Below are positions 3,170 to 61,215 of a DNA stretch of 64,000 nt, one piece after another. A model generated the notes under the pieces. That model saw only the letters and a list, made by a program, of their open reading frames with translations. It did not search any database and was not told where the DNA came from. Source of the DNA: Takakia lepidozioides (lineage: Eukaryota > Plantae > Bryophyta). The stretch lies in the NCBI GenBank assembly GCA_030704615.1, contig CM060733.1, positions 19,716,001-19,780,000 on the forward strand, read 5' to 3'. The number at the start of each line of letters is the position of its first letter. The stretch's first letter is position 1. A program made the position numbers and the translations under genes.

Positions 3170-4835
3170 TCTTATTGACGTGTAGCTCGGGGCTTAGCTG
3201 GATATCGTTGATGAAACTCTTGGACTTGTGACAGAAAGTCCGTCCAATTATCTTGGTGATAATTTATTGTACAACGAAGACACTGCTCCAAAATCTGGTT
3301 ACACGTTCGGTTTGACCATCAGTGTGTGGATGATTAGTTGTAGAGAGGTTGATCTTAGTATCCAATATATGAAATAATCCCCTCCAGAAATTTGATATGA
3401 ACTGTGGTCCTCGATCAGATACGATGTCATTCGGGAGTCCATGAATACGATAGATATTATTGAGGAAGAGTCTTGCAGTTTCCTCGCCGGTAACCGTTTT
3501 ATTACATAGAATGAAATGTGTCATCTTCGTAAAACGATCTACAATAACAAGGATTGAATCGGTGGTCTAGAAAATTGGAAGGTCCGTAATAAAGTCCATA
3601 GACACGGACGACCATGGTCCCTTGGGAATGGGTAATGGTTGAATAAGGCCGTAAGGTCGATGTCGTGGTCCCTTCGCTCTAGCACACGTGTCGCAAGATT
3701 TTATAAATTCTTTCACGAGTTTCCACATCTGCGTCCACCAATAGTCCCTGGATATCAATTCCATTGTTTTATTGAAACCGAAATGTCCTACAGCCGGAAG
3801 ATCATGACATGTTTGAAGAATTCGAAGTCGTGTAGGTCCTGGGGGTACATAGAGAAGTCCCTTGAAATAAAGTAAGTCATCTTTGAATTCGAAGTCGTTT
3901 GTAACATGTGGGTTGTCTCGAGGTCGATTTAGTTGACTTCGTAGTGTCGTAGCAAATTGGTCGCTCTTCAGTGCTTCCTGAATCTCCTTTATGATCTCTA
4001 CATCGTCATAGGTGGACATGGATAATATATTCACTTGGAGATTTGCTGGTTTCAAGATGATGGATTTCTGTTGGTTAAAAGTTACATCCCCTTCTTTTGG
4101 CGCAAGATACGATCGTCGAGAAAGAGCATATGGTTTTCTTTGAAGATATCCGGGACGGTAGATAATAACAAAATCAAACCTTGCTAGTGACATACTCCAT
4201 CTCGCTTGACGTCTATTCAAAACACGAGCACTCATAAAATACTCGAGGTTTTTGTGATCGGTATAGACTGTGACCTGATGTTTAGCTCCCTCCAATAGAT
4301 GACGCCACTCCTAAAAAACATCAATAATCGCTAGAAGTTCTTTGTCATGGATTTCATAATTGATCTCCACTGCGAAAAATTTGCGAGAACAAAAACCAAC
4401 AGGATGAAGTCGGCCATTTGTACCGTATTGAGAAAATACCGCATCAAGTGCAAAGTCCGATGCATCTGCTTCCAAAAAGAATGGTTTAGATGGGTCTGCA
4501 TGTACCAGTATTGGAGCCGTTGTAAATGCCTCATTTAGCCTTTCAAATGTTTGGTGAGCCTTCTCGTCCTATACAAATTTGTCATTCCCTTGTGCGAAAA
4601 GCAGTCTTCTATTCGTCTCCTTCTTTTATTCGTACAAGGTTGTAAGCTCCTCTCAAGTCGATCTTTGTGAAAAAATTTGCTCGTCAAAGTTGTTCGAGGA
4701 GTCCGGAAATCAGCGGTAGTGGGTAACGATTTTTTATAGTGACTTTGTTGAGCCCACGATAGTCCACACACATGCGTAACGATCTGTCCTTCTTCTTCAC
4801 AAATAAGATAGGTGCTCCCGCGGGTGATTTCGAAT
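3170..4835 (-). pseudogene. Gypsy pol 3' part: RT fragment, RNase H, integrase and chromodomain tail, with internal deletions and stops
   Basis: RT: [30 protein letters not shown]. RNase H: EADASDFAL...YEIHDKELLAI and VYTDHKNLEYF. Integrase zinc finger: CHDLPAVGH...CDTC. Integrase core: SMDFITDLP and IVSDRGPQF. A deletion joins NYHQDNWTDFL directly to the chromodomain C-terminal tail VQEFHQRYPAKP. The YxDD region of RT is deleted near 4590. Confidence 0.93.
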
Positions 4836-4989
4836 CTCGGTTATCAGCGTTAGGTCACGTCAGACCTGACGCTGACGAGACCTCCGTCACGTCAGGTTCG
4901 GGAATATTCTAGTAAAAATAGTACCAGGTAAAATACTGTCACTTAAGCAGCCACGTCGCCGACACGGTGGCGGTGGTAAATACATTTTG

Positions 4990-6360
4990 CAAATTAACAA
5001 AATGAGCACGACCGCCAATTCGTTTTGTTTTTCGAAATTAAAAAAGAAATGGCGACCGCCGTATTGGCGGTCGCTTCAATTTTTATTTTTTTTAAGCAAG
5101 ATTGGCGGTCGCTTTATTTTTCGAAATAGAAAACGAAATAGTGACCGTCATATTGGCGGTTGCTTCAAATGTTTTCTTTTTAAAAGCAAGATTGGCGGTC
5201 GCACTGGCGGTCACTTTTATTTTTTGAATTAAAAAAACAAATAGCGAACGCTATGTTGGCGGTCGCTTCAATTTATTTTTAAAAAAAAACAAGATTGGCG
5301 GTCGTATTGGCGGTCGCCTATTTTTTTTTTTAAAAACAAGCGACTGCCATATTGGCGGCCGCACGGTGGCAAATACATTTTTGAAAATTAACAAAATGAA
5401 TGCGACCGCCAATTATGGCGGTCGCTTTGTTTTTCGAAATTAAAAAAGAAATAGCGACCGCCGTATTGGCGGTCGCTTCAATTTCTTTTCTTTTAAAGCA
5501 AGATTGGCGGTCGCTTTATTTTTCGAAATAGAAAAAGAAATAGCGACCACCATATTGACGGTCGCTTTATTTTTATTTTTTTTAAAAGCAAGATTGGGGG
5601 TCGCACCGGCGGTCGCTTTATTTTTTGAATTAAAAATAGAAATAGCGACCGCTATCTTCGCGATCGCTTCAATTTATTTTTAAAACAAAACAAAGATTGG
5701 CGGTCGCCTAATTTAAAAAAGAAAACAAGCGACTGCCGTATTGGCGGTCGCACAATTTTGTAAATATGTATAGAACAAGCGACCGCCATATGGCGGTCGG
5801 ATAATCTCAAAAATATATTAAAAAAACAGCGACCGCCATTGGGCGGTCGCTTAATTTAAAAAATAGATAGAAAAACAAATGACCGCCATATGGCGTCGGT
5901 AAATTTAAAATTATATATAAAAAAAACAAACGACATATGAAAATAAAAGCGACCGCCACACCGGTGGTCGCTTGTTTTAAAACAATACAATATTTGCGAC
6001 CACCAAACCGGCGGTCGCGTCAATTTTAAAATATATATTAAGTTTAAGTGACCGCCAGCCTGGAGGTCGCTTAAACTTGAAAATACAAAGATTAAAAGCG
6101 ACCACCATATTGGCGGTCGCTTTATTTTAAATATATTAACAAATGAAGCGACCGCCATACCGGCAGTCGCATTATATTTTTGAGATAAAAAACAATAGCG
6201 ACCGCCATACGGGCGGTCGCTTAAATTTAAAAATATACAAAATAGAAGTGACCGCAATATTGCACAAAATGAAAGGAAATAAAAGCGACCGCAGTAATGG
6301 CGGTCGCTTGTTTTTCATAAAAAATAAAAATAGTGACCGTAGTATTAGCGGTCGCTTAAT
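4990..6360. repeat. Left subterminal array of GCGACCGCC-N(2-6)-GGCGGTCGC palindromes separated by AT-rich spacers
   Basis: Dozens of copies are directly visible, e.g. 5452-5477 and 5829-5851. Confidence 0.95.
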
Positions 6361-6776
6361 TTCAAAATTACAACAAATATGGTTGTGCAGCTTTTTTCGG
6401 GTGGGCGCTATTGGTTCGTCATTTATTCATTTCACTTTCATTTCACTTTCATGTTTCTGGATCATATATAAGGGAGGAATGTCACCAAGCTCCTCACTTC
6501 TTTTTGCGCAAAAACTTGAGGTTGTGTTCTTTTCCATTGAACGATAGTGTAGCCCAAGAGAAGGGTGCACACTTTTTGCCGTTGTGGCTTCCACCAAAGC
6601 CACTTCAGCAGATTGTGTAGAAGCTCAACATTACAACCCACATCGACCCACTTGGGTTGCTGACAGGTGTAGAAGTGTTGAGCTATCGCATTGCACTCTA
6701 CATTCACAACAAGTTCATTTATAGATGACTATTTTTTGTTATTTGCATCGCTAAGTCCCAGGGGAGTGGATATTGG

Positions 6777-8528
6777 GTGAAGATGAGGGAGGAATGGAGC
6801 CCTTGGTATACGGTAATCCCGAACACTGTCAGTGCCACTGGTAGTGTTGAATGCAACCTATGTGGATTAAAGCTTTCTTATCGTAAGGATCGGTTGCTCG
6901 CTCACCTCGGCTATAAAGGTGTGAAGAGCGCTGGGGTGGGTTTATGCCCCAAAGCATCTATCCGGGTAAAAAGCCATTTTGCCCAGTGTGGAGATAATAT
7001 TCCAATATCTTTGAATCTGGACATGACCTCTGAGCAGAACACTCCATCTTCCCGTCAAGATGCCCCGATTAGTACCCAGGGCGACTCTTGTGAGGCTTCG
7101 GGTGTCCTTGGACAAGTGGGTTGTGCCGTAGCAACACCTGCTTCAACACCTCTTTGTACCCTACACTTCAACGGAGTAGAGGATTACGGCAGTAATCCAT
7201 GCAAGAAGGTCTTAACTTGTCTGCGAAAAGACAGTTGGATAAAAAATGGGCGCAGTTTTTCTTCGAGGCCAACATACCATTTAATGTGGCAAGGCTTCTG
7301 ACATTTGTTTCTGCCGTTAGAGCAACCTCGGAATCCAGATCCACGTACGTGCCTCCGACTTATCACAATCTCCGCACAGGATTGCTAGAAGACGCAATGA
7401 CCGAGCTTACCCAAAAGGTCAACGATAGGACGGGCGAGTGCATCAGAAAATATGGAAGCACTATATGTGCCGATGGTTGGAGTTCTGTCACAAACAGACC
7501 GTTGTTTAATGTCATGCTCGTATGTCCAGCTGGGGAACAATTCTTGGGATCGGTCGACACTAACGGCGAGAAGAAAGATGGACGTTATCAATACCAACTA
7601 TTGACGGACTTCATCGAACAGGTCGGAAGTGATAGAATCGTGCAAATATGCACAGACAATGCCGCTAACATGAGAAACACTGCAGACATGTTGTTGGCAT
7701 GTTATCCCCATATGTACTGTCAAGGTTGTGCTGCTCATATCCTTGACCTCATTTTGGAAGATTGGAAAAAAGAACAGTGGGTGAAACAACTTGTCAAGCG
7801 AGCAAAGACTGTTGTGTCGTTCATCCGCACACATCACATCCCTTTGGCAATATATAGGAGGCACGAACCCAAATACAGCCTCCGCAATCCAGGCGAAACT
7901 CGTTTTGCCACTAATTTCTTGATGGTGGATCGGTTGGTGACGGTGAAGAGCAGTCTGGAGCACACCATCATCGATCCTCAATGGGATGCGTACACACGGA
8001 CATACCGGGACTCCAGAAAAGCCAAGGCATTGGGCAAAAGTCGAAAAGTTCGAAATAGCATTCGCAGCGATGATTTTTGGAAGAAATGTGAAAACTTTGT
8101 TTATATGGTAGAGCCGGTGTTAATCGTCTTGCGGTAGTTTGATGGAAAGGAATCAGTAATGGGCAAGGCATGGTTACTAATGCAAAATCTTGAGAAGTAC
8201 GTCCAATCCTTGAGGCATCCTCCCTTCTCCTTGGAACCTGAACTTGCGGACAGTGCTGAGGATACATTTTACGACCGTCGTTCGATGGTTCGAACGGAAT
8301 TGCATTATGGGAGGGCTTTACTCAATCCATTCTTGCTCGACAATACCATGCTCCGAAACGACGCTGATGCCAAGGCCGGCCTCGTGCGAGTGCTCATGCG
8401 ATTGGCTCCGCCGAACCATGTAGAGAGAGCTATATCCGAGTACCAATGCTTCTCAGATCGTCGCGACCCTTTTGAGGACATGTCGGATCCAAAAGAGCTC
8501 AATATGTTGCAACATGAATGGTGGGATC
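6777..8528 (+). pseudogene. hAT transposase, N-terminal and catalytic part (BED-like zinc finger, DUF659 / RNase H-like DDE core), with frameshift and stop
   Basis: CNLC...LLAHL...CPK; FFEANIPFNVA; TICADGWS; IVQICTDNAANM; CAAHILDL; PGETRFATNF. Homology stops abruptly after QHEWWD. Confidence 0.93.
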
Positions 8529-10005
8529 AAAAGACGCTGCTGCTCTACAACAATCCAGAAAGGCAGTTGAGATGACACAAAAGACGGTGGATGCAGCTGT
8601 GCAGGCTCAACAAAAGGGGTTGAAGAAGAGGACTCGCAAGGAACAGCAGTTGTGACACCCAAGAAGACAAAGAAACAGAAACAAAAATAGCAGGAAGAGG
8701 GTGACGAAGAGGACTCCGATGGAAACTTTGCAACCAGCCCACCCCCCAAAACGTAGCCGAAATCCCCTGTGCCCACCGTTGTCACAAAAGGACGAGAACA
8801 TGCTTAGCAAAGAAGACACTCTTCAACCCCCGGTGGGACACCCTTTTCGAGCCGGTGGAAATGAAGAGGCCGAAAGTGGAGCCAGAAACAGTAGTTCATT
8901 GTGTCAACGAGAGTTTCTTGGCGGCTTTGGATGGACGGGCAGCCAAGTTGGCATACATCAAGACCATGGAGGGTCTCAAGGGCAGAGCACTAAGGAAGGC
9001 GGATGCCGAAGAGCCTTCCGACACCTTTGGGTTTCTGAAGACGGTCTTATTCTTTGAGAAGGTGTGTGCAGGGAAGGATTGCAGGAGGGGCGGAAAAGCC
9101 ACCAAGTGGTCTTGCGATATGATCATCTTGGATATTCCGGACATAGAGCCTGTGGAAGGACTGCAAGCTTTGCCATCTTGGAACAAGTACTCCGAGGACT
9201 TTTGGAAGAAATGATTCGGGCTCGCCCGCATGGTGTTGGCAAAAAACACGGGGGCAGGAATTGCAAAGTGGACCCGCAAGAGCGCCGTCCCAATTCTGAA
9301 GAAGAAGTGGACATGCATCAACACATTGGGCCTTCGGTCGGAAGGGAAGAAGGTAATTACGACATTGGCAATCATCCTTTCATTTTGTAAGCTATTTTGA
9401 AATGCGGTGCTGCATTTGATTTCTAATCGTTCCCCACTGTGTATGCAGACGAAGCAGTTTGATGCATACTGCTTTGTGAAGGAGAACTCGACCTTTGCTT
9501 TCCGGAAGGATGGATTGTTGGTTGACCCGAACTGCGACCCCATCGATTACGACGTCATGTTCAACAACGTTCCCACGGAACTCCTCCCTCATAGCCTCAC
9601 TTCAACGGATCCCCTGCGGTATTCACAGACTCGGAGCAGACAATTATGGAGGCATGCACTGACCTAGAGGGCAAAGTGCTGGACCTCATCTGTGGAACAG
9701 GTATGTAGATTCTTGTACTATGTTGTTCTGCAAATTCGCATTATGTTCAAATTCGTCATATCTGAAGGGTCATGTTTTAATGAGTGGATGTCATTCTAAC
9801 AGGTGCCTCAATGTGGGCTGGGCGGTTTTCCGACCGGCCCCTCTTTGCCTACGAGGAAGACACATCCGTCTGGGGATCCCATCTGGAAGGGCGTCAACGG
9901 AATGTGAAGGCTCTCATCGAAGCCAAAGATTCCTCGGATGATTCGTCGGACTCGGAGGAAGAGACAATGGACATTGATGCCGAGGAGAACCCGGAATACG
10001 AGTAA
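8529..10005 (+). pseudogene. C-terminal part of a TE-associated gene encoding a beta-class amino (N6A/N4C) DNA methyltransferase-like domain; 2 introns, degenerate
   Basis: Motif IV-like CDMIILDIPD (~9113-9142) precedes motif I-like EGKVLDLICGTG (~9667-9700), followed by ASMWAGRFSDRPLFAYEED. GT-AG introns at 9353-9448 and 9701-9802 splice in frame. Stop at 9212-9214 and a frameshift near 9665. Confidence 0.72.
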
Positions 10006-10399
10006 CTGCAAACATTGTAAGTTTGCAAAGCCTTCTGGGTGATTTTTTGTCACACGCATTTCCAGACCGTGGTTCTCATTGGTCTCGTGGGTGATTGTTA
10101 TGTGCAGGATTCCAAGATCCGAGTCGAAACCAGTGGCGCCTACATTTCTTGCCAGGGAGAATGTCTCGTTCTTTGCGAGGACCGTCTTCATGAAGAGGCC
10201 GCATTTCTGATTTGGGAAGGACGTGGTTTGAAAGATGGTGTAGTTTAGAAGCACATGGGAGAGGGGATATCAACAGCGGGGAGAATTTCCTTTATATACT
10301 CTGGAAGAGATTGTAAATGTACAGAGAGTTAATTAAAATTCTACAAATCTTGAAAATCATCATCACTATCGTCATCCTGTCCTTGACTGTCCTACTCCC

Positions 10400-10980
10400 C
10401 TTCCACCCCCTCATTGCCTTTCTCATGTCCAGTAGACAGCTCGTTGGCCAGGCTTTCAAAAATCCCATCTTCCCTTTGTGGAACTGACCATCTCACCTCC
10501 GTTGGGTCGTTCTCCTCCCTGTCTGCATCGCTCTCTTCCGCTAAATCACATATATACTTTCACACCCGTCTACCTGTCTCAGCTGCTGCCAACTCTTTCC
10601 TTATCCTTCTGTCCTCCCTATTTCCAACATTAACAGCGTTTCAGGTCCTTGATCATTTTTGTCAGGCCTATGGCTTTAGAGTCAATTCGAATAAGTCCAT
10701 GGGATTGTTGTCCAGACTCAAAGATCCTTCTGCAGCGGCTCGCTGTCCCCCCTATACCATCGGACTCTCTTGGTTACCTGACGGGAGCTCTCATAAGCTC
10801 CTTGGTCATCAAATAGGTCATGATATCTCCCTCAGCCAAGGATTCTCCTCTGTCATCTCTAACATGAAAAAAAGCTTTTCTACTGGAGCTCCGCTAGGCT
10901 GTCTCTAACGGGTAGAGCCCGCATCAGCAACCCAGTCCTTTTAGCCTCCATATGATTTCTCATTTCTGTCTGCTCCCCTG
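10400..10980 (+). mobile_element. LINE (non-LTR retrotransposon) RT C-terminal fragment
   Basis: LDHFCQAYGFRVNSNKS...KLLGHQIG, then after a frameshift WSSARLSLTGRARISNPVLLASI*F. This is typical of the plant L1 RT thumb region. Confidence 0.7.
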
Positions 10981-11926
10981 GTTCAAGCTCATGACTCCTG
11001 AGGGGTGCTAGTGCTCAAGTGTAGCTCTTGGGTCTTATTGAAAAATGCTCCTGTAGGATTTCCATAAAATCAGCTCTCCGTCTGCCCACTGGACAGGCTC
11101 ACGGAAAGTGTGGCGGCTGCGATTCAGGATCTAGAACGCCTAACCCCCCATGTTTCTTCTTCTGACAGATCTGTTCCCCCGAAACTAGGGCTTTTCTATT
11201 CTATTGGGCAAGGACTCAGTGGCTCCCCAAAGGAAGTTACCAAAGGTGTGATTACTGAGACACTGGGAAGCTAGCAAGTTCCTCATGTTTTGGCAGTCAA
11301 AGCAATGACTAAAGAACAATTGTGGCAGGAAGTCTTCTCAAATCCTTTACAGTTGTGGGACAACAGGTTTGATAAGGTGACTCCGTCTCCATCTAGGACA
11401 TGAAATAGTTGGTCAAGGAGTGCTTTTGACTGGGGCTGGCATGATGAGTTCTGTATGCTGGATTATGCTCCAGTTGCATAGATTGATGCAATTGTCACAA
11501 CAGCCCTTTCTTATCTAATGTAGGTTGTTCAAGCCTATTCTCTGTTCTTTGATTTACGCGCGGTGCTTGGTTGTTATAGATTGGTCTGTGCCAGCCTTTG
11601 TTGAAGCTACTGCTGATCAGCTGCCAACTGCTGGTTTTCACAGAAAAGTCCAAGGTTACCAGACTTCAGAGATAAGGGCAGTAGTAATGTCCTTGGGATT
11701 GAGGGTTGGTCAAACCCTCCCTGGGGCAAAGCAGAGCCATCTGCGATGCTACAAGGTTCAGCACAATTTGAAGGTTCTAATGTCGATATGCAGCATGGAT
11801 TTCCAGGACAAAAATACAGCGGGTATTCTTTTGATGACCAATGAAACAAATAGAATTGCGTAAGTGTACTCTCATAGTAGATGACTGCAGTGGTTTTGTA
11901 GCTATCGATCTGTAGCAATAAGATCC

Positions 11927-21545: not shown

Positions 21546-21593
<48 letters not shown>

Positions 21594-43330: not shown

Positions 43331-43334
43331 CAAC

Positions 43335-47330: not shown

Positions 47331-47399
47331 AGTCCACTGAAGCACGAAAACAAAACTGATTGGAAACCGAAATGCGGCACCGCATTTCAGATGTGCTTG

Positions 47400-48800
47400 G
47401 GAGGGTAGGAGAATCTTTCGGGTTGAGGTCCGCCATGACATTCTTGAGCAGGGAGGGGTCTTTCACCTTCACCTTGAGGATGACACACTCCACCATGTAA
47501 TGCCAGCCAATATGCTTGGCATGGTTCTGCTTGATGTACTCCCACCAGGCAAGAAGTCGGTGGTTCCCATCCCACACAAAAAACATTTTGTCCGACATAT
47601 GGCCGAAGTCTGGATCACCCTTCAGCATTGTCTCAAATTCATCATTGTAAATGTGTCAGTGGGTATCCCATGCTAACAATTCATCCGCAGTGGGTCCTCG
47701 AGTTTTGCCGTCTTCATTCCCAATGGAAACATAGAAGGCTGTCGAACCTAGACGATACCCTTCTTGAAATGCAAACTTGAGCTTATCGACATCTCCTGGA
47801 AGAGCCTGCCTGAGAATGGGAAGGGAGACCATGCGACAGAGTGGAATTCAAAGAGTCCGCTGGAATATCTTGCTGCCCAGAACTATGCCAATGCTATTTG
47901 TTGTCTCCTCCAACATTGTATCCGCTGCTCTTTGGAATTCCTCTGGAGACATTTTTGCAGGTGGCGGTAGGGGCTGAGCAGCTGGAGCATCCCCAACTGC
48001 AGCTGTACTCTGGGAATCTTTGCGGGCAATTCTTGCATTGTAGAGGCCTCCTCCGGGCCTGCAGTATTCTGAAGTTCTTCCTCAACGGTGGTGAAGTTCT
48101 ACTGCGAACGTTGAGCAGCAACACCTTCCTCCGCTGATAGATCGATAAAATCGGTCGATCTCGTTGCCTTTGCTGCAGCAGAGATGCCCCCAACATCACC
48201 TGCCTGGAAATCAAGCAGGAACTGGGCTTCAGCTCGTGGAATCGGTTTTGCGGGAGACTGCTCCGCCCTCCCCCTGATTGTCTTCTGCTTCTTGATTCTT
48301 GCAGGTGAAGGTGTCTACTGCATTTGAATGTGCACTGCACCCTTCTGCTTCACTCTCTTGGGGGGGGGGGGGGAACGGCTTGGTCCGGTTCATAAACCAG
48401 TTCAAGGACGGGCTGCTTCTTCTTCGTCTTTGCTGGAGAAGGGCCCGACCCCTGTTGACGATTCTCCATGACCTTCAAACGTGAGTCTTTCTCTGGGGTT
48501 TTGAACTGCAAAGACTTGTCTTTCCAAGCCGCGTCCTTGAAACACACAGGGCTAGGCCCAACATGAAGACCCGTGCTCATGGATCGGCTGGGTGTGCATG
48601 CTGCAGCTAGCTCCATGGATTCTTCCTACGGCTCTTCGGATTCCTGCAATCCCTCCACCACCTCCACCTTTCGAATTAGGCATGCAAACATCTTCTGCAT
48701 TCAAGGGTCCTATCATACAGTCTAAGAATTGCACAACAAAAATGAGGGAGGGTTTCGGTGCTCGATCAACTGTGCGCATCCTGATAGCACGGAGCTCTCA
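47400..48800 (-). pseudogene. ParB/Sulfiredoxin-like domain gene, degenerate
   Basis: EGYRLGSTAFYVS...KMFFVWDGNHRLLAW matches the hhhhDGxHR motif of the ParB/Srx fold. The upstream region is charged and low-complexity, with stops and frameshifts. Confidence 0.6.
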
Positions 48801-49222
48801 CTAGGTTGTCTGTGTTGCCTGCTGTTGCGAGATGACCATCTCGTCCTGAAGACGCATCTGCTTCCTCCCCTTCGGCATTGGGCCTACGTCCAAAGTACAA
48901 CTTGCGGAGCTTGCGACGATGTCTCTTCTCTGGTGCACGAACTTCCTCCCTCTCAGGTTGGAGCATAAGAAGAACACAGACACGGAAAATGGGCGAAGAG
49001 TGCAGATGGAAAGGGCGCGAGAGGGGTGACTGAGTAGACACGACAAATGAAAATGAAACGGCGGTGATGCACCACTTGAGTTCGAAAGGCTGGGATGGAA
49101 GTATCTCCTTGTGGACTATGCGTCGTTACAAAATTCGAATCGTCAAAGGTACGCCTGCCGTCCGCCAAACAAACATCATTAACCAACGGTCAGGCCGCGC
49201 AGCCAGCATGAGTGCAAACATC

Positions 49223-49845
49223 AAAATGCGGAGCCGCATTTCCGTTGGTCCACGTGTTCACATATCATAGCATTTGCGTCCCAACGTCTCATGAGTTAGA
49301 GTGAAAACGGAAATGTGGCGCCGCATTTCCGTTAAGGCAACTTTGAGTTACATCCCGAACGGAAATGTGGTTTCATGCCTAACATGCAAAACGGAAATGC
49401 GGCGCCGCATTTCCGTTCTGGAAAGTCGGAAGGTACGACTCGGACGGAAATGCGATGCCGCATTTCAGTTGCAGTGTTTTATGATTTACAATCAGAAAGG
49501 ATATGCGGCACCGCATTTCCATTCCACTGTTACATACCTTACTTGTTGGACGGAAATGCGGCACCGCATTTCCGTTCTGGAGAGTATAAAGGTTTCCCAT
49601 GGATGGAAATGTGGTGCCGCATTTCTGTCTTACTGCTACATGCCTGAGATGCAAAACGGAAATGCGGCGCTGCATTTCAGTTCTTGAAAGTCAGAAGGTA
49701 CGACTCGGACGGAAATGCGGTGCCACATTTCAATTGCAGTGTTTCATGATTTACAATCAGAAAGCATATGCGGCACCGCATTTCCGTTCCACTATTACAT
49801 ACCTTACTTGTTGGACGGAAATGCGGCACCACATTTCCGTTTTCG
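49223..49845. repeat. Array of 22-bp palindromes GGAAATGCGGCACCGCATTTCC at exact 53-bp period (265-bp higher-order unit)
   Basis: Copies start at 49393, 49446, 49499, 49552, 49605, 49658, 49711, 49764 and 49817, with extra copies at ~49223 and 49309. Confidence 0.95.
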
Positions 49846-49869
49846 ACATAATCATCCATTTCCGTACAT

Positions 49870-50045
49870 AAATCCATTTATATCATCCATATTTGGCGAA
49901 TTCATCCCTAATTTATTTTTCATTTGGAGAAATTTGGCGATTTCATCCATGAAAAAACAGGGAATTTGTGACATAACCTTCATTTTATTTTTATTTTTTC
50001 TGAGGTCGAAATTTGGCGAAAAATCGCCAGCAAAAAAAACGCTAC
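49870..50045. mobile_element. Probable MITE fragment
   Basis: AT-rich, with repeated AATTTGGCGA and an end of GAAATTTGGCGAAAAATCGCCAGCAAAAAAAACGCT. Unrelated to its flanks. Confidence 0.45.
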
Positions 50046-50134
50046 CCTGTAGTGGATGCGTGGCTCAACCGCATGACTTGGTGGTTCCAGGTAATTCAAG
50101 GTACTTCCCCCAATTTGTTTTGCTGGAATGAATT

Positions 50135-50790
50135 TCATGAATTGCTACGTGACAATGCATGTTGAAAACGCAGGTAATGACAAATGCGAAGGAGCAAGTC
50201 ATAATGCATACAAATTCGTTTGGCTTGTATGTGAAATGGGATGGAACACAGACATTGGAAGACTACGTAACACGTTTCAGATGTGCGTACAATGACAACC
50301 TCTTTGCCAGGGAGCTGCAGACAACAAGAAGGAGCGTGGAGTTTACACATCAGGAGGGGGCGGGAAAAGCTGCAATGCGAATTGTATACAGGTGAAGCCC
50401 AGCTCCCGTTGTATGCAAAAGCTGGGTTATGAGGTTTGCCTGGGAAATGCGGCACCGCATTCGTACTTTACGTTTTCAGTTGCACTCTGCGAATACATTG
50501 GTCATAACTTGTACTCACGCATGCTGACTTTCTTGCAGGTATATAAAATATGTGCTTCTCAAGACAGGGGCCCCGACTCAAGAACCCCCGTTCTTCATGG
50601 CTTGGACCGTGGCGGGCCCAAGTTGTGTCTACACACCAGAGACGCAGAAACAATGACATGCCGCGCATCTCATTGGATGCCCGTGGTACCTGGACATGTC
50701 TAGTGGATTTGTTGACGAATCAGAGAAAGATCTACACACGAAAGCAGAGGAGAAGAGAAAGGAAAGATGTATCCCTGCTAGGCCTGAGTC
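50135..50790 (+). pseudogene. Upstream exons of an unknown TE gene, inferred to be the N-terminal part of the methyltransferase gene continuing at 8529
   Basis: Exon ...AAMRIVY, a GT-AG intron at ~50392-50538 that contains the element's palindrome, then exon RYIKYVLLK...KERCIPARPES with one TGA. The frame continues as KDAAALQQSRKAVEMTQK at 8529. Confidence 0.6.
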
Positions 50791-52042
50791 GAGCTGGAGC
50801 AAGAACATTGGCTCCCATTGCGAAGCGTATTCTTGCTCGAGTGTGCTCTGCCTCATCTTGCGAACGCAATTGGAGCAGTTACTCATTTATTCACAACAAG
50901 ATTCGCAACAGGTTGAATCCCGCGAGGGTTGACAAATTGGTGTATGTGTATATCAATTGCCGACTGCTACGTGAGAGGACAGCAGATGATGCTGCAGCAT
51001 GGTATAAGAAGAATTTGCATTCCGAAGACTCTGCTTTTGAGGCTGATTCGATGAGTGACGATACTGAGCCTCAAAGAGAATCATTTCAGAGAGAGAATCA
51101 TTTGCCTCCGATAGTGAAGATGAATCCGATGATGCTCCCGAAAATACGTATGACCCGTTTACATTCACAAAGGATAATGCTTATATCCAGCCGACCTTTG
51201 ATAACCTTCTTGAAGAAATGCGTATCGCAGATGAAGATGAAACTGCAATTGTGTCATCCCCAGAACATGGTCCTCAAAATGAAGTTGGGGTCGACCTTCG
51301 TTCCCCACTACACGCTGAAGCCACCGGTAGTGCCCCAATGGAGCTTAGGGGTGATGTATTGCCAGGACCGATCGATGTACGCAACCCTGTTCATACAAAC
51401 GATGGTGTCGAACCCATTGTACAGTCGAAGGGACGGGATCATGCCTCACCAATACGACCAGCTCCACCACAATACCAAAACCGATCCAGCTCCCCATCAA
51501 CACAACGGGCATTAAGGAGCAACAGGGTTGATCTGTTTTTCACACGCATGCATCATTCTGCTGCATTGGACCAGGTGGAAGTTGAAGCCTCGGATGAGGA
51601 CAACCTGCCACTACAATTTCACCTTAACCGACGTGTTGCGCAGCAGACCCGTGGTTCCTCACATGTCGAACCATCTAATGTCGGTCTTTCTCGGGCAGTC
51701 CCCCCTCCGATACCTCTTTCGAAACCACCTTCGATTGCGTCCCAAGTCCATAAACGACAGAGAATAGTCCAACCTTTTGTAGGCGATCGGCCCACAAACA
51801 GGTCAGATACCGTGGATGATATTCAAGACCGGAGTGGGAGTCGACCTCAGAGAGAACTAAATGTGGTTCGAGATCGTTTGCAGATTCAAAGGCCTGGATA
51901 TATGAGGTCGGATAGGGAGAACGATTCCAGCACTGATCATGGCAACGGTGGTAAAGTCGAGGGTGACCCGGATTTTCAACCCATCGGAGCATTAGGATTA
52001 GGATCTTCTTCGTCTCGCCGTCGAAGCAATAGAAGGAATTGA
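50791..52042 (+). pseudogene. hAT transposase C-terminal dimerisation domain plus long disordered tail
   Basis: AGARTLAPIAKRILARVCSASSCERNWSSYSFIHNKIRNRL...KLVYVYIN is the Dimer_Tnp_hAT signature and the segment missing after HEWWD at 8528. Confidence 0.93.
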
Positions 52043-52324
52043 AGCAAAATAGCTGTAGGCATGCATCAGCACTTTTTAGTGGACATGTTTATATTTATGT
52101 ACTGAAGTAATACCAATGTGATCATTGTCACTATGAGTATTTGTATTGTTGTTGTGTATGTGTTGGAAAATAAAAGATGTTGCCCATGTGTATACCAGCC
52201 AAAATGTCGGCCAAAGGCACCGTCACTTGCTCATGTTTGTATTCGGTGATTTGCTTGTGGAATGAAGAACAATTGTGTTATTCTTCCAACTGTGCATTCA
52301 TTTTTATTAAAATGGAGGTACTTC

Positions 52325-53730
52325 GAAGGTGGCGGTCGCTTCTACGAGGTCTGCCCTGCGTGTGGAGCGAGGAATGAGGAGGGGGGAAAGATATACATGG
52401 CGGTCGCTTTTATTTTATTTATTTTGGAAATAAAGCGACCGCCATTACTAGCGGTCGCTTTTAGTTTAATTGTTTTGGAAATGAAGCGACCGCCATTACT
52501 GGTGGTCACTTTTATTTTAATTATTTTGGAAATGAAGCGACCGCCGTTACTGGCAGTCATTTTTTTATTTTTCTGGAGCAAAATGGAGCGACCGCCATTT
52601 ATGGCGGTCGCTTTTATTTTAATTATTTTGAAAATAAAAATGGAGCGACCGCCAAGGTGGTCGCTTCTACGAAGTGTGCCCTGCGCATGGAGCGAGGAGT
52701 GAGGCGGGGGGAGGGGGGCATATAAGCTACGGCCCATTCTCCCCTCACTTCCGGTCGCTTGAAGTTTTTTTTTGTTTTTATAAATGCAGCAACCACCATT
52801 GTTGGCGGTCGTTTTTTTTCTTTTTGGCGAAATGGAGTGACCGCCATTTGTGGCGGTCGTTTTTTCTTTGTTTTTAAATGGAGCGACCGCCATGGTGGCG
52901 GTCGCTTTTACGAGGTCTGCCCTGCGCGTGGAGCGAGGAATGAGGCAGGGGGAGGGGGGGGGGGGGGGGGGGCATATAAGCCCCCAGTCATTCTCTCCTC
53001 ACTTCCATTACTGGCAGTTTTTGTTTTTACAAAATGCAGCGACCGCCATTTCTGGCGGTCGTTGTAATGGTTATTTTTTAAAATGCAGCGACCGCCGTTA
53101 TTGGCGGTCGTTTTTTTGTTTCTTGGAGGAAAATGGAGCGACCGCCATTTGTGGCGGTCGCATTTATTTTAATTATTTTGAAAATAAAATGAAACGACCG
53201 CCATTACTGACGATTGATTTTACTTAAATATTTTTTTAAATCAAGCGACCGCTATGACTGGCGGTCGCTTTTATTTTAATTGTCTTGAAAATCAAGCGAC
53301 TGCCATTGTTGGCGGTCGCTTTTATTTTAAAATGTTTTGAAAATGAAGCGACCACCTATGTTGGCGGTCGCTTATTTATTTTAAAGTTTTTGAAAATGAA
53401 GCGACTGCCTATGTTGGCGGTCGCTTATTTATTCTAAATGTTTTGAAAATGAAGCGACCGCCTATGTTGGCGGTTGCTTATTTATTTTAAATTTTTTGAA
53501 AATGAAGCGACTGTCTATGTTGGCGGTCGCTTATTTATTTTATTTCCGGATAATGGAGCGACCGCCTGTTCTGGCGGTCGCTTCTTTTTTTTTCCCTCGG
53601 AAAATGGAGCGACCGCCAGTTCTGGCGGTCGCTTATTTTTTTATTTTCCGAAAAAAAAATTCTTGGTAGTCATTTTTAGAATATTTGCCCTGCACGTGGC
53701 CCGAGGAATGGGGGGGGGGGATATAAGCCA
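52325..53730. repeat. Internal array of GCGACCGCC/GGCGGTCGC palindromes (~51-53 bp period), with 3-4 copies of a CTGCCCTGCG..TGGAGCGAGGAATGAGG..G-run..ATATAAG cassette
   Basis: Palindromes start at 53245, 53296, 53348, 53401, 53454, 53507, 53558 and 53609. The cassette occurs at ~52340, ~52665, ~52908 and, partially, ~53686. Confidence 0.92.
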
Positions 53731-54042
53731 AGGGAAGCTTATTCTCCCCTCACTTCCTCTCCACACAACTTCTGTGTGCGTGACATTTCATTATTCCACG
53801 ACACGTAGTCACGTGGAGAAGGAGGCCATTGGTTGGGTGGGGGGTATTTTTTGTCGCGATTTCTATAAGGTCGTTGCAGAATGCTCCCATAGGCCCTCCT
53901 CTGGTTTCCAGGATCATTTTATTCTACAAAATTAGCTTTTAGGAACTATTTTGACACCTACTCAAACCTACTTAACTGGGGGAGGGTTTAGAGTTACGTC
54001 TTTTTAGAAAAACCTCGTTTAGTGTTGTTTCGATTGTTGCAG

Positions 54043-55659
54043 AATGACAAAGGGTCAAGATGATGACCGTCATGGAAGAGATGACCCCAATGAACATGGA
54101 CCGCCCCCTAAGAAAATTCAAGGCAAGACTTGAATTGGGAAGTATATGGTGACCCTAGCATACTAGCAGAAGAGGGCTGGGACGATGTTCCGGAAGAGTT
54201 CCGGTGGCCGATGGCGAGATGCAAAAAATTCGTGAAATGGTACCACATCAATTGATTGTGACCTTTGGATAGGCATGACGTGCAAACCCGAAACAATTAC
54301 GCAGAGTCCATGTCTTGCACGAACTTGCATTTCCAGCATAGGGCGAATGAGGTGCATTGCACATTGTGGGGTCAACCTCTCTTAAAAGGTCAAATCCTGT
54401 ACATCTTGGCAGCCATGTTGTACGTGGAGATCATACTCTTGCGTCCAGTGAATTGACAAACTGCTAGTAGGAGGAACGCAAGGTTGCTATACGATTTGGA
54501 GTACATCCCGGACATGTTCGGAATACAACCGGTTGCACCGTTAAAGGAACAACTGGCGGAAAGAAACCAACGAATCAGGACCCTGCAGGACCGACTAGAC
54601 TGACAAACACTGCGCATAGCCGAGTTGGAAGCTACATTGCAAGACATGCCTCCAAACAATGAAGGCACTGTTGTCCACAATGATGATCGAAAAAACGTCA
54701 TGGACATGGACACGGAGTTTGCGATGCCCCATCGCAGTATTGACCTCATCATTCAGGAAATTACGGACGTTCTTGACCCTGTGGCCGATGAAACCATGGT
54801 TGAGGAACAACGAATTACGGATGGGAGAAGGAGGAAAGGAAAAGAACCAGTACTGGAAACCGGGGAATGCTCGAGGGTCGCCATTCAATCGGAGATGAAC
54901 CCGATATTAGATGTCGACCGCGTTACAAAGGAGCGGGACATTGTCATGGCAATTGCATGGCGCTTGTCCAAAACGCTGGAGATTCAGGCACGGGTCCCAT
55001 TGACTGGTGATTGGGAGAATTGGGTACAATGGGCGACCCATTTGGCCTCCAGAGAAGCACGGGTAGAGCGGGCACTGTCAGGCTTGCAACGTGTCGCACG
55101 CATGTCGAACCGTAGCGTGGATAGCATTTATGCCAACATGCAAATGTATAACGACCTCTGCATCGCATCAAGCGTGTTCGCCGGGTATACCAATTAGGCA
55201 GATGTGGATTCTATGTTCGATCGATGTGAGCACATAATTTCGGGGTCGAATAGAAGCATAAACTGGGAATTGGAGATAGAGGAATAGTGGGACACCACAA
55301 CAAGGATGACCAGCCTCATCAAACCGGCCCAGATGGAGGAGATACAATGAGGCGTTTTGCCGTCATGGATATCAAATGACACAGTTTGTTCGATGTGTAG
55401 GAATCCATACGGCCCAGAGGGATGTCATGTGCTTGGATCATGTGGACATATGTTCCATCTCATATGTCTTATCCCGCAAGCCCTGCGGACGAGCGCTTGC
55501 CCAGAATGTCGTACATCAATCCATCGCCGTTTCTATGAGTCGGTGGGCTTGGAGGATCGGATGCCCATAGATTTTGAATACAATCGACACACCCCCCTAT
55601 TGGATGGGCTACCATATACATTTCTCCACAAAAAGAGCTTCAAATGGCATACCATGTAA
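54043..55659 (+). pseudogene. hAT-borne gene with a coiled-coil region and a C-terminal RING-H2 finger (putative E3 ligase), with several stops
   Basis: CSMC...SCGHMFHLICL...ACPECR is a C3H2C3 RING. Coiled coil LKEQLAERNQRIRTLQDRLD*QTLRIAELEATLQ. Collinear ORF pieces are interrupted by stops. Confidence 0.75.
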
Positions 55660-56835
55660 CAGGTCCCAGTATAATCGAAGACGAAACCCCATTCATTCAA
55701 TGGGCGATTGAATGGTTGCCCATCCAAATGATTTTTGTTTGCTTTCAATCTTTACCACTATGTTCAACATACCATGTATCAGATCCTGAATTAATATCAG
55801 ATCAATCGAAATTCATTCAATGGCTCAACGGATGGTTGGCCATTGAAATGATTTTGGTTCGCTTTGAGACTTGGCCACTATGTTCAATGTGCCATGTAAG
55901 AGGCCCCAGAGTAATATGAGATCAATCGAAATTCGTTCGATGGGCCAACAGATGGTTGCCCATCCAAATTATTTTCGTTCGCTTTGAAACTTGGCCAGTG
56001 TGTTCAATGTACCATATGATACGTCCCAGTATAATACGAGATCAATCGAAAATCGTTCAATTGTCCAATGAGGCGTTAACTTGTCATCTGGTTTTTGTTC
56101 AATGCGAAAAAGAAATCTTGCAATGCGTGCACGACTATTGCACCCATTGAACGGATGTGGTTGAAGCCCTTTTTTTGCCCGCATGTGCTTGAACATGTGT
56201 GCCACACATGTGCGGAGACACAACAGACGAATAAATCATTTGCCTCCCCATCAACGCACTCCCCCCTCAAGTCATTCCACAATTTAATTGAATTTAAATT
56301 TATTTTAAGCCAATAAATAGGTTTGACTGCCTTTCAGTGGGGGTTTCTGGCACGTATCGATTTTGTTTTTGGCTCAATTTTGTTCTGCGGCTTTCAGCAT
56401 CCCACGACTATTCCCCTGCCAAAATTTGGACCAATCAAAAATGCCCCCAAAAAAGGTGGTCTCTTCGCTCACTATTGTAGAACTCTCTATAAAAAGTGCA
56501 TGAAGTAGAACACAAATCAAGTTTGGAACAGGGGAGAAACTGTGGATTTGGGTCCAAACGAATTTTGATTGCTCCCAAATTTGGCACGCATGTTGCATAT
56601 GGCTACATTACACGCCCCATCCAAGAACGGAATGAAAAAAAAATCGTGAGCACGCGAAACACAGTCCAACAGGTCCCAAAGCAATAGCAGCTCCAACATA
56701 ATACATTCAACGGGTGAACGGATGGTTGCCCATCCAAATCATTTTTGTTAGCTTCCAAACTTTGCCAGCACGTTTGAGACACCGTCTCACAGGTCCTCTG
56801 ATACGTCCCAGTGTAATATGAGATCAATCGAAATT
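55660..56835 (+). repeat. ~120-bp diverged tandem repeats (4 copies at 55660-56100, one more at ~56700-56835)
   Basis: GATCAATCGAAA at 55800, 55920, 56040 and 56822. ATGGTTGCCCATCCAAA recurs. Confidence 0.85.
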
Positions 56836-57563
56836 ACTTTGTGCTTTGAGAACTTTGTGGGTATGTTTGTATAAAGATCATAGATTTTGCGAAATGATTA
56901 TGAAATACGCAGGGACCAGGCGAAATTTGTTTGGAAGACGACCGTTCGTAACTTATTCGCGACTTGAAAGCACAAACACAAATAATCCGTGCAAACAATC
57001 TCAAGAATCATATGTACTGCAAGGTGTTTCATACTGCCGATGTTCATGTAGCTGAATTATTTAGGAATCGTTTTGCTACTCCCATGCCAACAACATCAGG
57101 TCCACTGCGACTGCCATATTCCGAATTCCGTATCAGCCACCACGGACATGAAACCAGGAACTTCACACAAAATCTCCAATTCATTCAATTTATGGTGGGC
57201 CATGGCTGCAGCCTGCAAGCTGGCCGGGGTGGCTGATACGTCTGTTTGAACATGACAGTCTCAGAGGACGTTGGCATGGGAATAGTAAAAAGAGTACTAC
57301 AGAATTCAGCTAGAGGAACAACAATAGCATAAAACACCTTACCGTAAATATGATTATTGACATTGGTATAAAAGAACCATTGTATCGCCATAAATCTCAT
57401 ATCTACGAGACTATGGTCTACTCCGTCATATATTCGGCTCAGGCCAATTGAATGGCTTGCCCATGAACCGAAGTACTACATGGGCTAATGTGACTATCTC
57501 ATTCTTGTTGTTGTCGTACAACCTTTGTAGCATTGAATGCCAACAACCTCCCGTAAATTGGTC

Positions 57564-58286
57564 CTAGAATATACTTTGATCATAATGAATGCCGCCATTT
57601 ATTCGTACCGCTATCTTCCCAACGGCAAAGGCCTCCGACGTCATGTCCTGGGGGGGGGGCCTGACATTCGTATTGAAAACCGATGCAAAATATTTTTCCA
57701 CCCACCATCTTTTTGCGAGTTCCCGGTCCAGCTTGTCTTGGTTTTCAAACTGGTACGGCGAGGCTTTGCGTATGCCCAATGGGGTAGCTAAGCCCCAATC
57801 ACATACCCCAATCTTGATCTCCTTGGTGCCATCTGGAAAATGCAACAAGATGTTGTCGGGGGACAAGTCGTTGTGCATGACACCGTTCTTGTGGACAACA
57901 TCCATGATGCACACCAGTGCCCATGCAAGTTTACTGCGCACTTTCCGCGTGGCGTCTTTTGCCCTGCTTTGGATCCACCTATTGAACTTCGGCTTGTCCC
58001 TGTCCGCCGTCCACTTAGCCCCTGCCAAAGCGTTTGTCATTTTCCTCTCCATATTTTGCTGAAAAATCTGAAACCCCTTCCATCCATGCCTAACATAAGC
58101 ACTCTCCAGCCTCATCATGTCTCTACCCTTGAAATAATCCACTACCACTTCTTTCACCCTATCCAAGGCATCCGGTCTCGGGTAGTCTGGCTTGTTGACC
58201 AGACTATCCCGCTCGTAGGCACGTTTTCTCTTCCTCCGCCACCCAGACGACCCCGCCCCAGAACTTGAATCCACAACCTCCGACAT
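57564..58286 (-). CDS. Protein kinase-like ORF (C-lobe only) carried by the hAT element
   Basis: VMHNDLSPDNILLHF (catalytic loop) and IGVCDWGLA (DFG equivalent). No Gly-loop or VAIK is visible, so the ORF is probably internally deleted. An NLS-like WRRKRKR is present. Confidence 0.7.
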   Translation of the reverse strand: MSEVVDSSSGAGSSGWRRKRKRAYERDSLVNKPDYPRPDALDRVKEVVVDYFKGRDMMRLESAYVRHGWKGFQIFQQNMERKMTNALAGAKWTADRDKPKFNRWIQSRAKDATRKVRSKLAWALVCIMDVVHKNGVMHNDLSPDNILLHFPDGTKEIKIGVCDWGLATPLGIRKASPYQFENQDKLDRELAKRWWVEKYFASVFNTNVRPPPQDMTSEAFAVGKIAVRINGGIHYDQSIF

Positions 58287-58869
58287 TGTATCAACCTTTG
58301 CCCACTACAGGATCCAAAACCTTAGAAAACGACAATGAACGCTTGTGGATGGTGTATTCGTAGTTTTCTACAAAAAAGCAGGCCGCCGGAGATCCGGAAA
58401 CGGCAAAATGGTGATACGATGATTGTACCGTGAACAAGTGTATGGGACTGACCAATAGAAAACCGACAAAACCTCCCCCCCCAAATAATCACAATTGCAC
58501 CTCTCGTTGGCAGTGCCAAGCAACGAAGTCCGAAAGGACTACAAGATGCCAAAGAACCGCACCACAAGAGGGGCAAAAGTGATCAGAAAAGGAGGGGGGA
58601 ATGGTTTATATAGGCGCCCACCAGCCCTCCCCCCACAAAAAAAAATGGCATTATGCTTGAAAAGGCGCGACTAGCCAGTCGCACCTCGCCACGCACACCC
58701 ACATGGGAGAGGTCAAGGGTTCAAAACCACCTCCCCTCATCCCATTTGTTTCGTTTTTCCTGACCCGTGGCACCTCGCCACGTGGTTGGCCGAGGTGCCG
58801 CTTCATGATTAAAAAGTAAAAACAAAACGCCACACGGCGGGTCCCTGGATTTCTAAGAAAAAAAAAAAC

Positions 58870-59215
58870 ACGCGACTGCCTGGCGGTCGCTATATTTATA
58901 AAAACAAGAAGAGCAACCGCCACATGGCCAATGTAGGCGGTCGCTTATTTTAAATGGGCGGTCGCTTCATTTAAAAATAAATAAATTACGGGTGACCGCC
59001 AATATGGGCGGTCGCTTCATTTAAAAATAAATAAATTACGGGTGACCGCCAATATGGGCGGTCGCTTCATTTAAAAATAAATAAATTACGGACGACCGCC
59101 AATACTGACGGTCGTTTAGTATAATATAATATTAAATTACAAAGCGACCGCCAATATGGGCGGTCGCTTTTATTAAAAATAATAAATTATATGCGACTGC
59201 CAATATAGGCAGACA
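58870..59215. repeat. Right subterminal GCGACCGCC/GGCGGTCGC array (50-bp near-perfect units)
   Basis: GGGCGGTCGCTTCATTTAAAAATAAATAAATTACGG at 58956, 59006 and 59056. Confidence 0.95.
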
Positions 59216-59411
59216 CATTTTTTTAAAAGAGTTAATAAATATTAATAATTGGCCACGTCTGTTTTACACCGTGGCTGCCATGTCATTACAAATGGTAGAA
59301 GTAAATCGTAAAAGTCAAATGTAAAAAAAATTACATGGATAAACATCCGGATTCGACGTGACGTGACGGCCGACGTGTTAGCGCCACGTCACGTCAGGAA
59401 TGATAACTAGG

Positions 59412-61215
59412 TTTCGAATGTCCAATGAAATTCTTTGATAAATTTTCATCAACGTATTCGCGTACAGCAACCAGCTCCGTCTGAGATAAATTGTAGATCG
59501 GGCCGAATGGTGGTTGAGCTCCTTCTTGCAACTCAATTGCACAATCATAAGATCAATGTTCTGGCAACATGTCAGCATTTTTCTTCTCGAAGACATCTTT
59601 GAAATCTTGATATTGAATGGATAATGTCGAAGTACCTTGGTTTGTTGTGGTTTTGAACGGAGTCGCATAAAGTGCAAATGTCGCGTCTTTCTTTGTAGCT
59701 CTCATGAAGGCTCTAGCTCCAAGAAACAGGGGTTGAACACCTTTGGTACTTTTGCATTTTTGTCTTGCCGAAATTTTTCGTGATCGCTAATCGATGTCAG
59801 GATTATGAAGTACAAACCAAGGAAGTCCAAAGATCACAGGATTCGTTGGAGACTGGATGACATTGAAAACAATCTATGATGCTTGATTTTTAAACTTCAC
59901 TTCAAGGGGTCGAGTTTCATGGTCAATATTTCTTGATGCTAACGGTCGTCCATCGATGATTTCAACAAGGGCCGAGAATTTCTTTCTTACGAGCGTTAAA
60001 TTGTGTTGCTTCGCAAAGTCTTTGTCAACAAAACACGCTGAAGTGCCCGAGTCCAAAAGCGCTTCTACGGAGATATCTCGATTTTGCATCCTGATCTTTA
60101 CTGGAACTGTAAAACAAGGTACAGGGTCTGGAGGTAGAAAGAGACATTTTTTTGGTGAGGAATTTGGGGTGTCCAGCCGCATGGTCCCTACTGTGACTGG
60201 ACATCTTCGTTTTCCGACTTCCTCGTATCGAACACTTGAATTGTGCCCCGAGCTTTGAATATTCTATTGTTGGGACAGTTTAATGCTATGTGATCATCTT
60301 CTCCGCAACAAAGGCATAATCCATTTGAGCGCCGTATTTGTTTTTCTTGTGGCGACAATGGCTTGAATCAGACAACATCAATCTGCATGTAATCATTACC
60401 GGATGTCTGATGGATCGTTGTGTTTGCTGCCGTAGTAACAGCGGCATGGTGCGTCGCGACCATCCATATTGTTTCTCTTGACGTCTTTCGAACAAACGAT
60501 TATCGCATGCAATGACTTGGGTGATGAATTCGCTCAGTGTACTCACGTTTGACATTGTCAACAACAAATCTTTTACATCCTCTTTTAGCCCACATCGAAA
60601 CTGACTAATGAGACTCTTTTCATTCCAGTCGAGGTCGCACGCAAGTTGTCGAAATTCGGCAGCATAAACGGAAGCTGGACGTGCTCCTTGTCGAAGATTT
60701 CGCATCTTTGTCTCCGCAACTCTCTCTCTATCATTCTCTCCAAACGTTGCAGTGAACTCGGACATGAACGCTTCAAAATTGTATAGTAAATGCGAATTTT
60801 TCTTTAATAGCGGTGCAAACCAAAATAGGGCAGTGCCTGATAAAAGGGTGCCCACAAATCCCACTTGAATACCTTCATCAAGGTAGCGTTGTGGATGTAG
60901 TCGTAGGAACAATCGTACTTGTTGAACAAAACCGCGAAATCTTAATCTCGTCCCATCAAATTTTTCGGGCATGTTGACCTTTGGTTCCTTTGTAATCTGT
61001 TGAAGATTTGGAGGAACTGTTGTAGTAGGATTCGTTGTAGTAGAGATTCGTAGGTTGAAGATCCATTGTTCGACTCTTTCAACTCTGAAATTTGTTGTTG
61101 CAAATTGTTGAGAGCGTTGTCAAGATCTTGAGACTGATCAGCTTGTAGTTGGGCAGTAGAGGCACGAAATTCTTGTATCTGGAGCTGAAGACTCTGCAAT
61201 GTGGCGACCATTTCC
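59412..61215 (-). pseudogene. Gypsy gag, protease and RT N-terminus (5' half of the split chromovirus)
   Basis: Gag: MPEKFDGTRLRFRGFVQQVRL...LLSGTALFWF. Protease: ALLDSGTSACFVD. RT start: REYVDENLSKNFIGHSK, which ends at the TSD. Confidence 0.93.

Follow-up and report, generated by a model that had tools for sequence, protein, structure and literature searches.

In Pack-MULE, Helitron and CACTA captures, the host sequences carried between the transposon ends are as a rule pieces of genes, ranging from hundreds of bp to a few kb in length. Ac/Ds macrotransposons of maize, which enclose far more, were reportedly described by Huang and Dooner in 2008, and Durkin et al. are said to have traced colour sidedness in cattle, in 2012, to movement of KIT via circular intermediates. 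In maize, Ac-ended macrotransposons 10-28 kb long are known to leave their site and insert again (PMC9910405), and the composite insertions found there likewise combine ends from two elements (PMC9910405, PMC4270019). The cattle KIT circle translocation is discussed in PMC3784456, and the theory of circle translocation likewise describes the signature of circle re-insertion in organisms other than the one studied here (10.1101/2022.06.22.497135). Here we describe a locus of the bryophyte Takakia lepidozioides (contig CM060733.1, positions 19,716,001 to 19,780,000; this stretch of 64,000 nucleotides is referred to below as the window) in which a Ty3/gypsy retrotransposon is interrupted by a hAT transposon and the hAT transposon is interrupted, at one point of its transposase gene, by a 42.3-kb block of other DNA that includes at least five intact genes. 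On balance it is probable, if far from certain, that this block was a circle, consisting of a palindrome-bearing transposon and a gene island, that was opened within the transposon and end-joined into a passive hAT, so that the nest reads, from the outside inwards, gypsy element, hAT element, and circularly permuted element with gene island.

The locus is similar to the Ac/Ds macrotransposons in having a pair of hAT ends and an 8-bp duplication around tens of kb of host DNA. Those structures, however, have the ends of two elements or result from re-replication after reversed-ends transposition, whereas here one element was split once, by an insertion unrelated to hAT transposition, and the resulting unit is 54.6 kb long. 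With the translocations that proceed through circular intermediates it would share block ends that are neighbours in the source, end-joining junctions without duplication, and the transfer of whole genes. For cattle KIT, the donor locus, the recipient locus and the circle junction were all mapped, whereas the evidence here is at the level of the element family and comes from one contig, and it is a bryophyte transposon that received the block. As in Pack-MULEs, Helitrons and CACTA elements, host coding sequence lies between transposon ends, but in place of fragments there are five complete genes with their introns, intergenic DNA and transposon debris. The macrotransposon-like anatomy and the circle-type insertion are each of a known kind.

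A hAT insertion in a gypsy reverse transcriptase gene

A perfect copy of the 8-bp direct repeat TTTCGAAT is present on each side of the 54.6-kb unit (4828-4835 and 59412-59419), and the repeat fits nTnnnnAn, the target-site preference of hAT elements. Adjoining these copies on the inside are the hAT ends, CTCGGTTATCA at 4836-4846 on the plus strand and CCTAGTTATCA at 59401-59411 on the minus strand, which form 11-bp terminal inverted repeats with complementarity at 9 of the 11 positions. The end pattern CYYRGTTATCA has two matches in the 64 kb, both of them these hAT ends, versus 0.12 expected. Contigs of four public runs from the same organism were aligned to positions 3600-9600; the contigs are short (130-180 nt). 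The window has A/T where the contigs have G/C at 108 of the ~207 differing sites, an excess that reflects C>T/G>A transition decay, as expected of methylated repeats. The two mismatches between the hAT ends are also C>T/G>A changes and so follow the same bias as the hAT copy does relative to its family.

The DNA on both sides of the unit belongs to one Ty3/gypsy element, in which a pair of long terminal repeats (LTRs), gag, protease, reverse transcriptase (RT), RNase H and integrase are met in the order typical of gypsy elements. The RT is continuous across the insertion site once the insert and one copy of the 8-bp repeat are taken out: the minus-strand translation of the right flank reads ...REYVDENLSKNFIGHSK / ...LSQTELVAVREYVDENLSKNFIGHSK and ends at 59412, and that of the left flank, from 4827, carries on the RT for 38 residues. 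The two RT flanks were translated separately, and frame and exons were checked piece by piece. The LTR-like repeats (2035-2559 and 61357-61890) have TG..CA-type ends and are 82% identical over 560 nt and, as this identity is low and the open reading frames (ORFs) carry in-frame stops, the gypsy element must be old and dead. Uninterrupted versions of the site are present in other gypsy copies. Contigs of such copies, nine in run X1 and one in run X5, follow the window as far as 4839 and from there switch to AATGAAATTCTTTGACAAATTTTCATCAAT, the window sequence from 59424 onward.

Given the duplication, the ends, the restored RT frame and the uninterrupted site in other gypsy copies, the outer insertion is a genuine hAT transposition into a gypsy RT gene that generated the 8-bp duplication. 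A first-pass annotation, made from the letters of the window, had recognized the pair of 8-mers and the hAT ends beside them, the derivation of these ends through C>T/G>A changes, the return of the RT frame on removal of the insert and one repeat, and the flanking pair of LTRs, and to this extent its description is correct.

A single hAT element split at one point

The hAT sequences at 4836-8527 and 50793-59411 sum to one element of 12,311 bp, the 12.3 kb that the annotation had given for it. The two domains of its transposase are on the same strand, 42 kb apart, with DUF659 at 7199-8137 (E=1e-37) and Dimer_Tnp_hAT within 50550-51515 (E=1.8e-4); a BED finger was not detected in the transposase by the Pfam scan. 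A HMMER search, run exhaustively with the DUF659 part as query, found full-length homologues of 838-1024 aa. In tblastn alignments four of them follow the window from 6789 to 8527, where they reach ...HEWWD, and are picked up again at 50775-50796, 1-5 residues further on. The transposase ORF is therefore cut once, directly behind the WWD codons, at 8527/8528. The sequence of an unsplit relative is provided by contig record 29 (1902 nt) from run X5, a probable RNA run, the run type being a guess. This contig has an uninterrupted family transposase frame over the split point; it matches 7820-8528 and then reads GGGATC-TGATTGGA-GCTGGAGCAAGAACATT (TGATTGGAGCTGGAGCAAGAACATT...), for which the best match in the window, at 50785, extends over 26 of 30 bases. 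The intact family member thus has WWD-LIG-AGART where the window has the 42-kb insert. The hAT sequence resumes between 50784 and 50793, at most 9 bp were lost, and the insert (8528-50792) has a length of 42,265 bp.

Comparison of the two sides revealed no hAT target duplication at the insert borders. There are also no inverted repeats between the insert borders, nor between ~10 kb and ~41.5 kb, beyond palindromes and an AT-rich chance match. With no duplication, a loss of 9 bp or less and no inverted borders, the insert is not the work of a staggered-cutting transposase. Two candidate structures, a 5-6-bp duplication of CTGCT(G/A) at the insert borders and borders of the CACTA or Helitron type, were dropped once the intact hAT contig had fixed the breakpoints. 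A macrotransposon of two elements, with a second hAT end inside the unit, was also considered and rejected, as the end motif occurs only twice and the GCGACCGCC arrays at 52.3-53.7 kb are gene heads of the family. A single transposase ORF split at one point, together with only two occurrences of the end motif, identifies one element and not two.

The arrangement could have been created by the assembly, if the hAT halves were not truly 42 kb apart or if the interior had been mis-joined at repeats such as the PPR arrays and retrotransposon pieces. The interior does hold repeats, the contigs are only 130-180 nt long, and none of those listed reads across an inner junction. A mis-join would, however, be expected inside repeats and not at boundaries between hAT and non-hAT sequence. 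Moreover, the inner breakpoints are complementary within 9 nt in one ORF and the outer ones share one target duplication, so that both halves represent one hAT insertion that was later split, and an artefact appears very unlikely.

The cargo is, then, a single 42.3-kb block at one point of a transposase ORF, and the locus is neither a macrotransposon of two elements nor a Pack-type capture. The first-pass annotation had described a giant cargo-carrying transposon. A hAT-ended unit does enclose host genes, but they are not a captured set; they arrived within one 42.3-kb block that has no target duplication and has extremities from another transposon family.

In addition to the transposase, the gene set of the hAT includes a RING-H2 gene and a kinase gene, and palindromes of the form GCGACCGCC..GGCGGTCGC are arrayed at 5020-6380, 52358-53660 and 58954-59240. 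The copy in the window is dead in its own right, by a TAG stop at 8135-8137 that is private to it, all family contigs having G at 8135. Record 29 suggests that an intact, possibly expressed, autonomous copy is present elsewhere in the genome. Repeats with units of ~120 bp are located inside the hAT behind the RING gene, at 55648-56068 and 56668-56797.

Insert extremities and the case for a circle

The summed contig depth increases ~5-fold at ~8537, and the left extremity of the insert is therefore a repeat commoner than the hAT. A 16-nt palindrome, AATGCGGYRCCGCATT, has 16 matches in the window versus 0.02 expected; one is at 9401 and the rest are within 41984-50461, so that all are in the insert extremities, and at 49225-49835 they form an array with 53-bp phasing. 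The right extremity also has a weakly supported ParB-like exon (47332-47655, minus strand). From these features, both extremities would belong to one family of ParB/Mutator-like palindrome elements. Just ahead of the first right-side palindromes, at 41531-41764, the motif CATGAGC / GCTCATG occurs six times in forward and twice in reverse orientation, and this cluster is probably a subterminal region of the palindrome-bearing element. Two metagenome scans, one with the ParB exon and one with the paired palindrome pattern, returned a single match, a chance bacterial one. A methyltransferase that had been proposed at 8855-10005 found no support from Pfam, the PDB or sequence homologues. The 9-mer CAAAAGACG at the start of the insert (8528-8536) recurs 49 bp downstream, at 8577-8585.

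How the two extremities relate to each other is indicated by contig record 30 (run X5, 280 nt), which matches 8537-8637 and reads TCCCTGTTGGGCCAAAGTCGG + CAAAGGAAT + CTGCTGCTCTAC... The nine bases CAAAGGAAT are the homologue of 8528-8536 (6 of 9 identical) and, with the next 20 bases included, 26 of 29 match at 8528. The first 21 nt shown match the window best, both strands considered, at 50772-50792 (16 of 21), which is the last 21 bases of the insert, and the match is in the exact register of the junction. Record 30 differs from the window at several positions and must therefore derive from another copy of the element and not from the window locus. Its 136 upstream bases have no place in 3600-9600; since that stretch takes in the left hAT part, these bases do not belong to the hAT. 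The flanks of the break are purine-rich and basic-coding, with one frame on both sides. Apart from the palindromes, the two insert extremities have no sequence in common, which fits complementary halves. Based on this independent contig and on the distribution of the palindromes, the last and first bases of the insert would adjoin in another copy of the element, and the insert looks like a circular permutation of the element plus the gene island.

Several considerations argue against this reading. The permutation is deduced from one contig of 280 nt, belonging to a run of guessed type, and only 30 of the 136 upstream bases are shown. A match of 16 in 21 is expected by chance about once per six 64-kb windows; what gives it weight is that position and register are exact. 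The exact position of the right break is ambiguous, since the 9-mer at 50784-50792 resembles the hAT and the palindrome element alike, matching the hAT's own 9-mer at 7 of 9 positions and that of the palindrome element at 6 of 9. At ~10 kb and 41.5 kb the palindrome element showed no terminal inverted repeats, leaving its extent in the insert uncertain and, among the contigs aligned to 3600-9600, no listed contig or read bridges 8528 or 50792.

With palindromes of this kind and ParB-like coding at its extremities, and with a palindrome-element family that is abundant, the 42-kb insert might be regarded as one giant Mutator-like transposon that transposed into the hAT with genes on board. Its borders, however, have no 9-bp duplication and no inverted repeat, and in another copy they are contiguous, ORF-internal sequence. 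As the entry of the genes would also be left unexplained, such a transposon is highly improbable. A different possibility dispenses with the circle. A break in the hAT may have been repaired by two-ended invasion of, or template switching into, two neighbouring palindrome elements that flank the genes; this insertional duplication would leave a product identical to that of a circle. Junctions without duplication, the loss of 9 bp or less and a 9-nt zone of possible microhomology are all compatible with such repair, and an insert that starts and stops at the same element coordinate would also result if both ends searched for one short homology. But hAT and element match at no more than 6-7 of 9 nt around the break, with no homology at the left junction; we regard copying during repair as unlikely.

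The history that we favour, with a circle as intermediate, would begin with an old Ty3/gypsy element in place. The 12.3-kb hAT copy then entered its RT, with the 8-bp duplication, and the hAT was subsequently broken in the transposase ORF behind WWD and resealed around a 42.3-kb chromosomal piece; these two steps we count as established. Two direct copies of the element, one on each side of the genes, could have recombined to give the circle, or a segment with one copy could have been circularised. The circle would then have been opened within the element and ligated into the hAT break by end-joining, possibly aided by microhomology in the 9-nt zone at 50784-50792. Entry of one block at a single point without duplication, together with extremities that come from another family and look permuted, indicates that a single event, of recombination or end-joining, loaded the cargo into a hAT that was a passive recipient. 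Loading in place is a simpler history than loading before arrival, as it needs one event fewer, and its product has the anatomy of a macrotransposon.

The alternative order, in which the cargo was loaded at an earlier site and the whole 54.6-kb composite was then moved into the gypsy RT by family transposase supplied in trans, has some attraction. The entire unit stands between the two hAT ends and has a perfect 8-bp duplication around it, an apparently intact family transposase is present in a contig of the probable RNA run (record 29), and maize offers a precedent in Ac-ended units of 10-28 kb that are cut out and inserted again (PMC9910405). Nothing at the locus, however, requires that the unit moved, and at 54.6 kb it is about twice the size of the largest documented mobile hAT-ended structure. 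With the additional event, prior loading is quite unlikely; the first-pass annotation had rightly allowed for both orders. Movement of the 54.6-kb unit in trans, which that annotation had proposed, is a structural possibility, and conceivable given that Ac-ended units of 28 kb excise in maize (PMC9910405).

Taken to its full extent, the preferred reading would be that a germline circle, made of a Mutator-like element and at least five intact, probably essential genes (RH47/ISE1, PSRP4, MPS1 and two PPR genes), was re-inserted, that the gene island was thereby relocated or duplicated within a 54.6-kb hAT-ended unit that an intact family transposase could move, and that the locus is a counterpart of cattle KIT. 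We put this forward tentatively, and with more doubt than belief. If the circle reading holds, a single step sufficed to bring an intact block of genes, moved or copied, into a nest of transposons, with no transposase acting on the genes, and an accident placed functional-looking hAT ends around essential genes. A single locus would then bear both on circle re-insertion in plant germlines and on the size limit of mobile hAT-ended units. If it does not hold, what is left is a clean case of three nested transposon layers around a gene island, and it cautions against taking any cargo between transposon ends as captured.

Genes and other features of the window

The order within the insert is the distal part of the palindrome element, transposon debris, ~27-30 kb with at least five intact genes, and the proximal part of the element (Table 1). 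That intact host genes are enclosed had been noted in the first-pass annotation, and is confirmed by the 1067-aa ORF of the PPR-DYW gene, the three-exon RH47 gene, the PSRP4 ORF and the four-exon gene of the MPS1-type kinase.

Table 1. Positions of transposon parts, genes and other features in the 64-kb window
Feature	Position	Strand	Evidence and remarks
gypsy 3' LTR	2035..2559	-	82% identity to 61357-61890; gypsy reads on the minus strand
gypsy C-terminal RT, RNase H, integrase zinc finger; in-frame stops	2560..4835	-	RT_RNaseH and Integrase_H2C2 in 3567-4295; RT motifs downward from 4827
Left target-site duplication TTTCGAAT	4828..4835		Repeat match
Left hAT part	4836..8527	+	11-bp end CTCGGTTATCA; palindrome arrays 5020-6380; transposase N-terminus and DUF659 core 6789-8527 (...HEWWD); TAG 8135-8137
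Left insert extremity, distal part of palindrome element	8528..10005	+	~5-fold depth jump; one palindrome, 9401-9416; right limit approximate
Non-LTR-retrotransposon-like debris between element part and PPR-DYW gene	10400..11500	+	Translation read by eye, ORF2 C-terminal-like; no Pfam match
PPR-DYW gene, intact, intronless, 1067 aa	11927..15130	+	PPR, E, E+ and DYW_deaminase domains
RH47/ISE1-type DEAD-box helicase gene, intact	21061..23521	+	Exons 21061-21486, 21847-22875, 23177-23521
PSRP4 / ribosomal protein S31e (RPS31, Thx-type) ORF	27256..27711	-	PF17067, E=5.8e-15
Second PLS-type PPR gene	28163..30111	+	73%-identical paralogue of the first; without detected DYW domain
MPS1/TTK-type kinase domain, 4 exons	36150..38230	+	Pkinase profile positions 1-67, 105-153, 157-263
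Right insert extremity, proximal part of palindrome element	41520..50792	+	Palindromes 41984, 42125, 47371, 49225-49835, 50446
CATGAGC cluster, probably subterminal	41531-41764		
gag/aspartic-protease fragment of LTR retrotransposon, nested in palindrome element	43563-44817	-	
Right hAT part	50793..59411	+	Transposase C-terminus (AGARTLAPIAKRIL...); dimerisation domain ~50808-50948
Right hAT part, internal palindrome arrays	52358-53660		
Right hAT part, RING-H2 gene	55351-55656	+	
Right hAT part, kinase gene	57567-58304	-	
Right hAT part, subterminal arrays and 11-bp end	58954-59240; 59401-59411		
Right target-site duplication	59412..59419		Repeat match
gypsy gag, protease, N-terminal RT	59420..61356	-	Retrotrans_gag in 60286-60972; RT N-terminus translated
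gypsy 5' LTR	61357..61890	-	Pairs with 2035-2559

The three exons of the RH47-like helicase gene encode, without stops, residues 1-576 of 591, with 71-73% identity to RH47 of Ceratodon, Physcomitrium and Sphagnum and 63-66% identity to liverwort sequences, values that would suit a moss lineage about equally far from the three mosses. The genes next to RH47 in Ceratodon and Sphagnum are unrelated to those found here, both species being too distant for synteny to be informative. Exact-protein look-ups with the PPR-DYW ORF and with two junction-spanning ORFs found none of the three on record. The MPS1-type kinase has all catalytic motifs, including GxGxx... and GTxxYMSPE, with exon 36790-36900 read by eye, and the long ORFs from ~33.2 kb are probably its N-terminal part.

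Several further repeats are present. Periodic repeats of 303 bp, at 12235-14372 and 28507-29735, correspond to the P-L-S triplets (101 aa) of the two PPR paralogues, which are 16 kb apart. An 86-bp direct repeat with 93% identity (25394-25475 and 27731-27816, 2.3 kb apart) brackets the PSRP4 region, and its two copies are possibly the ends of a small element. At the edges of the window, outside the gypsy LTRs, there are repeats with units of ~600 bp at 491-1732 and of ~66 bp at 63546-63993, in tandem or dispersed.

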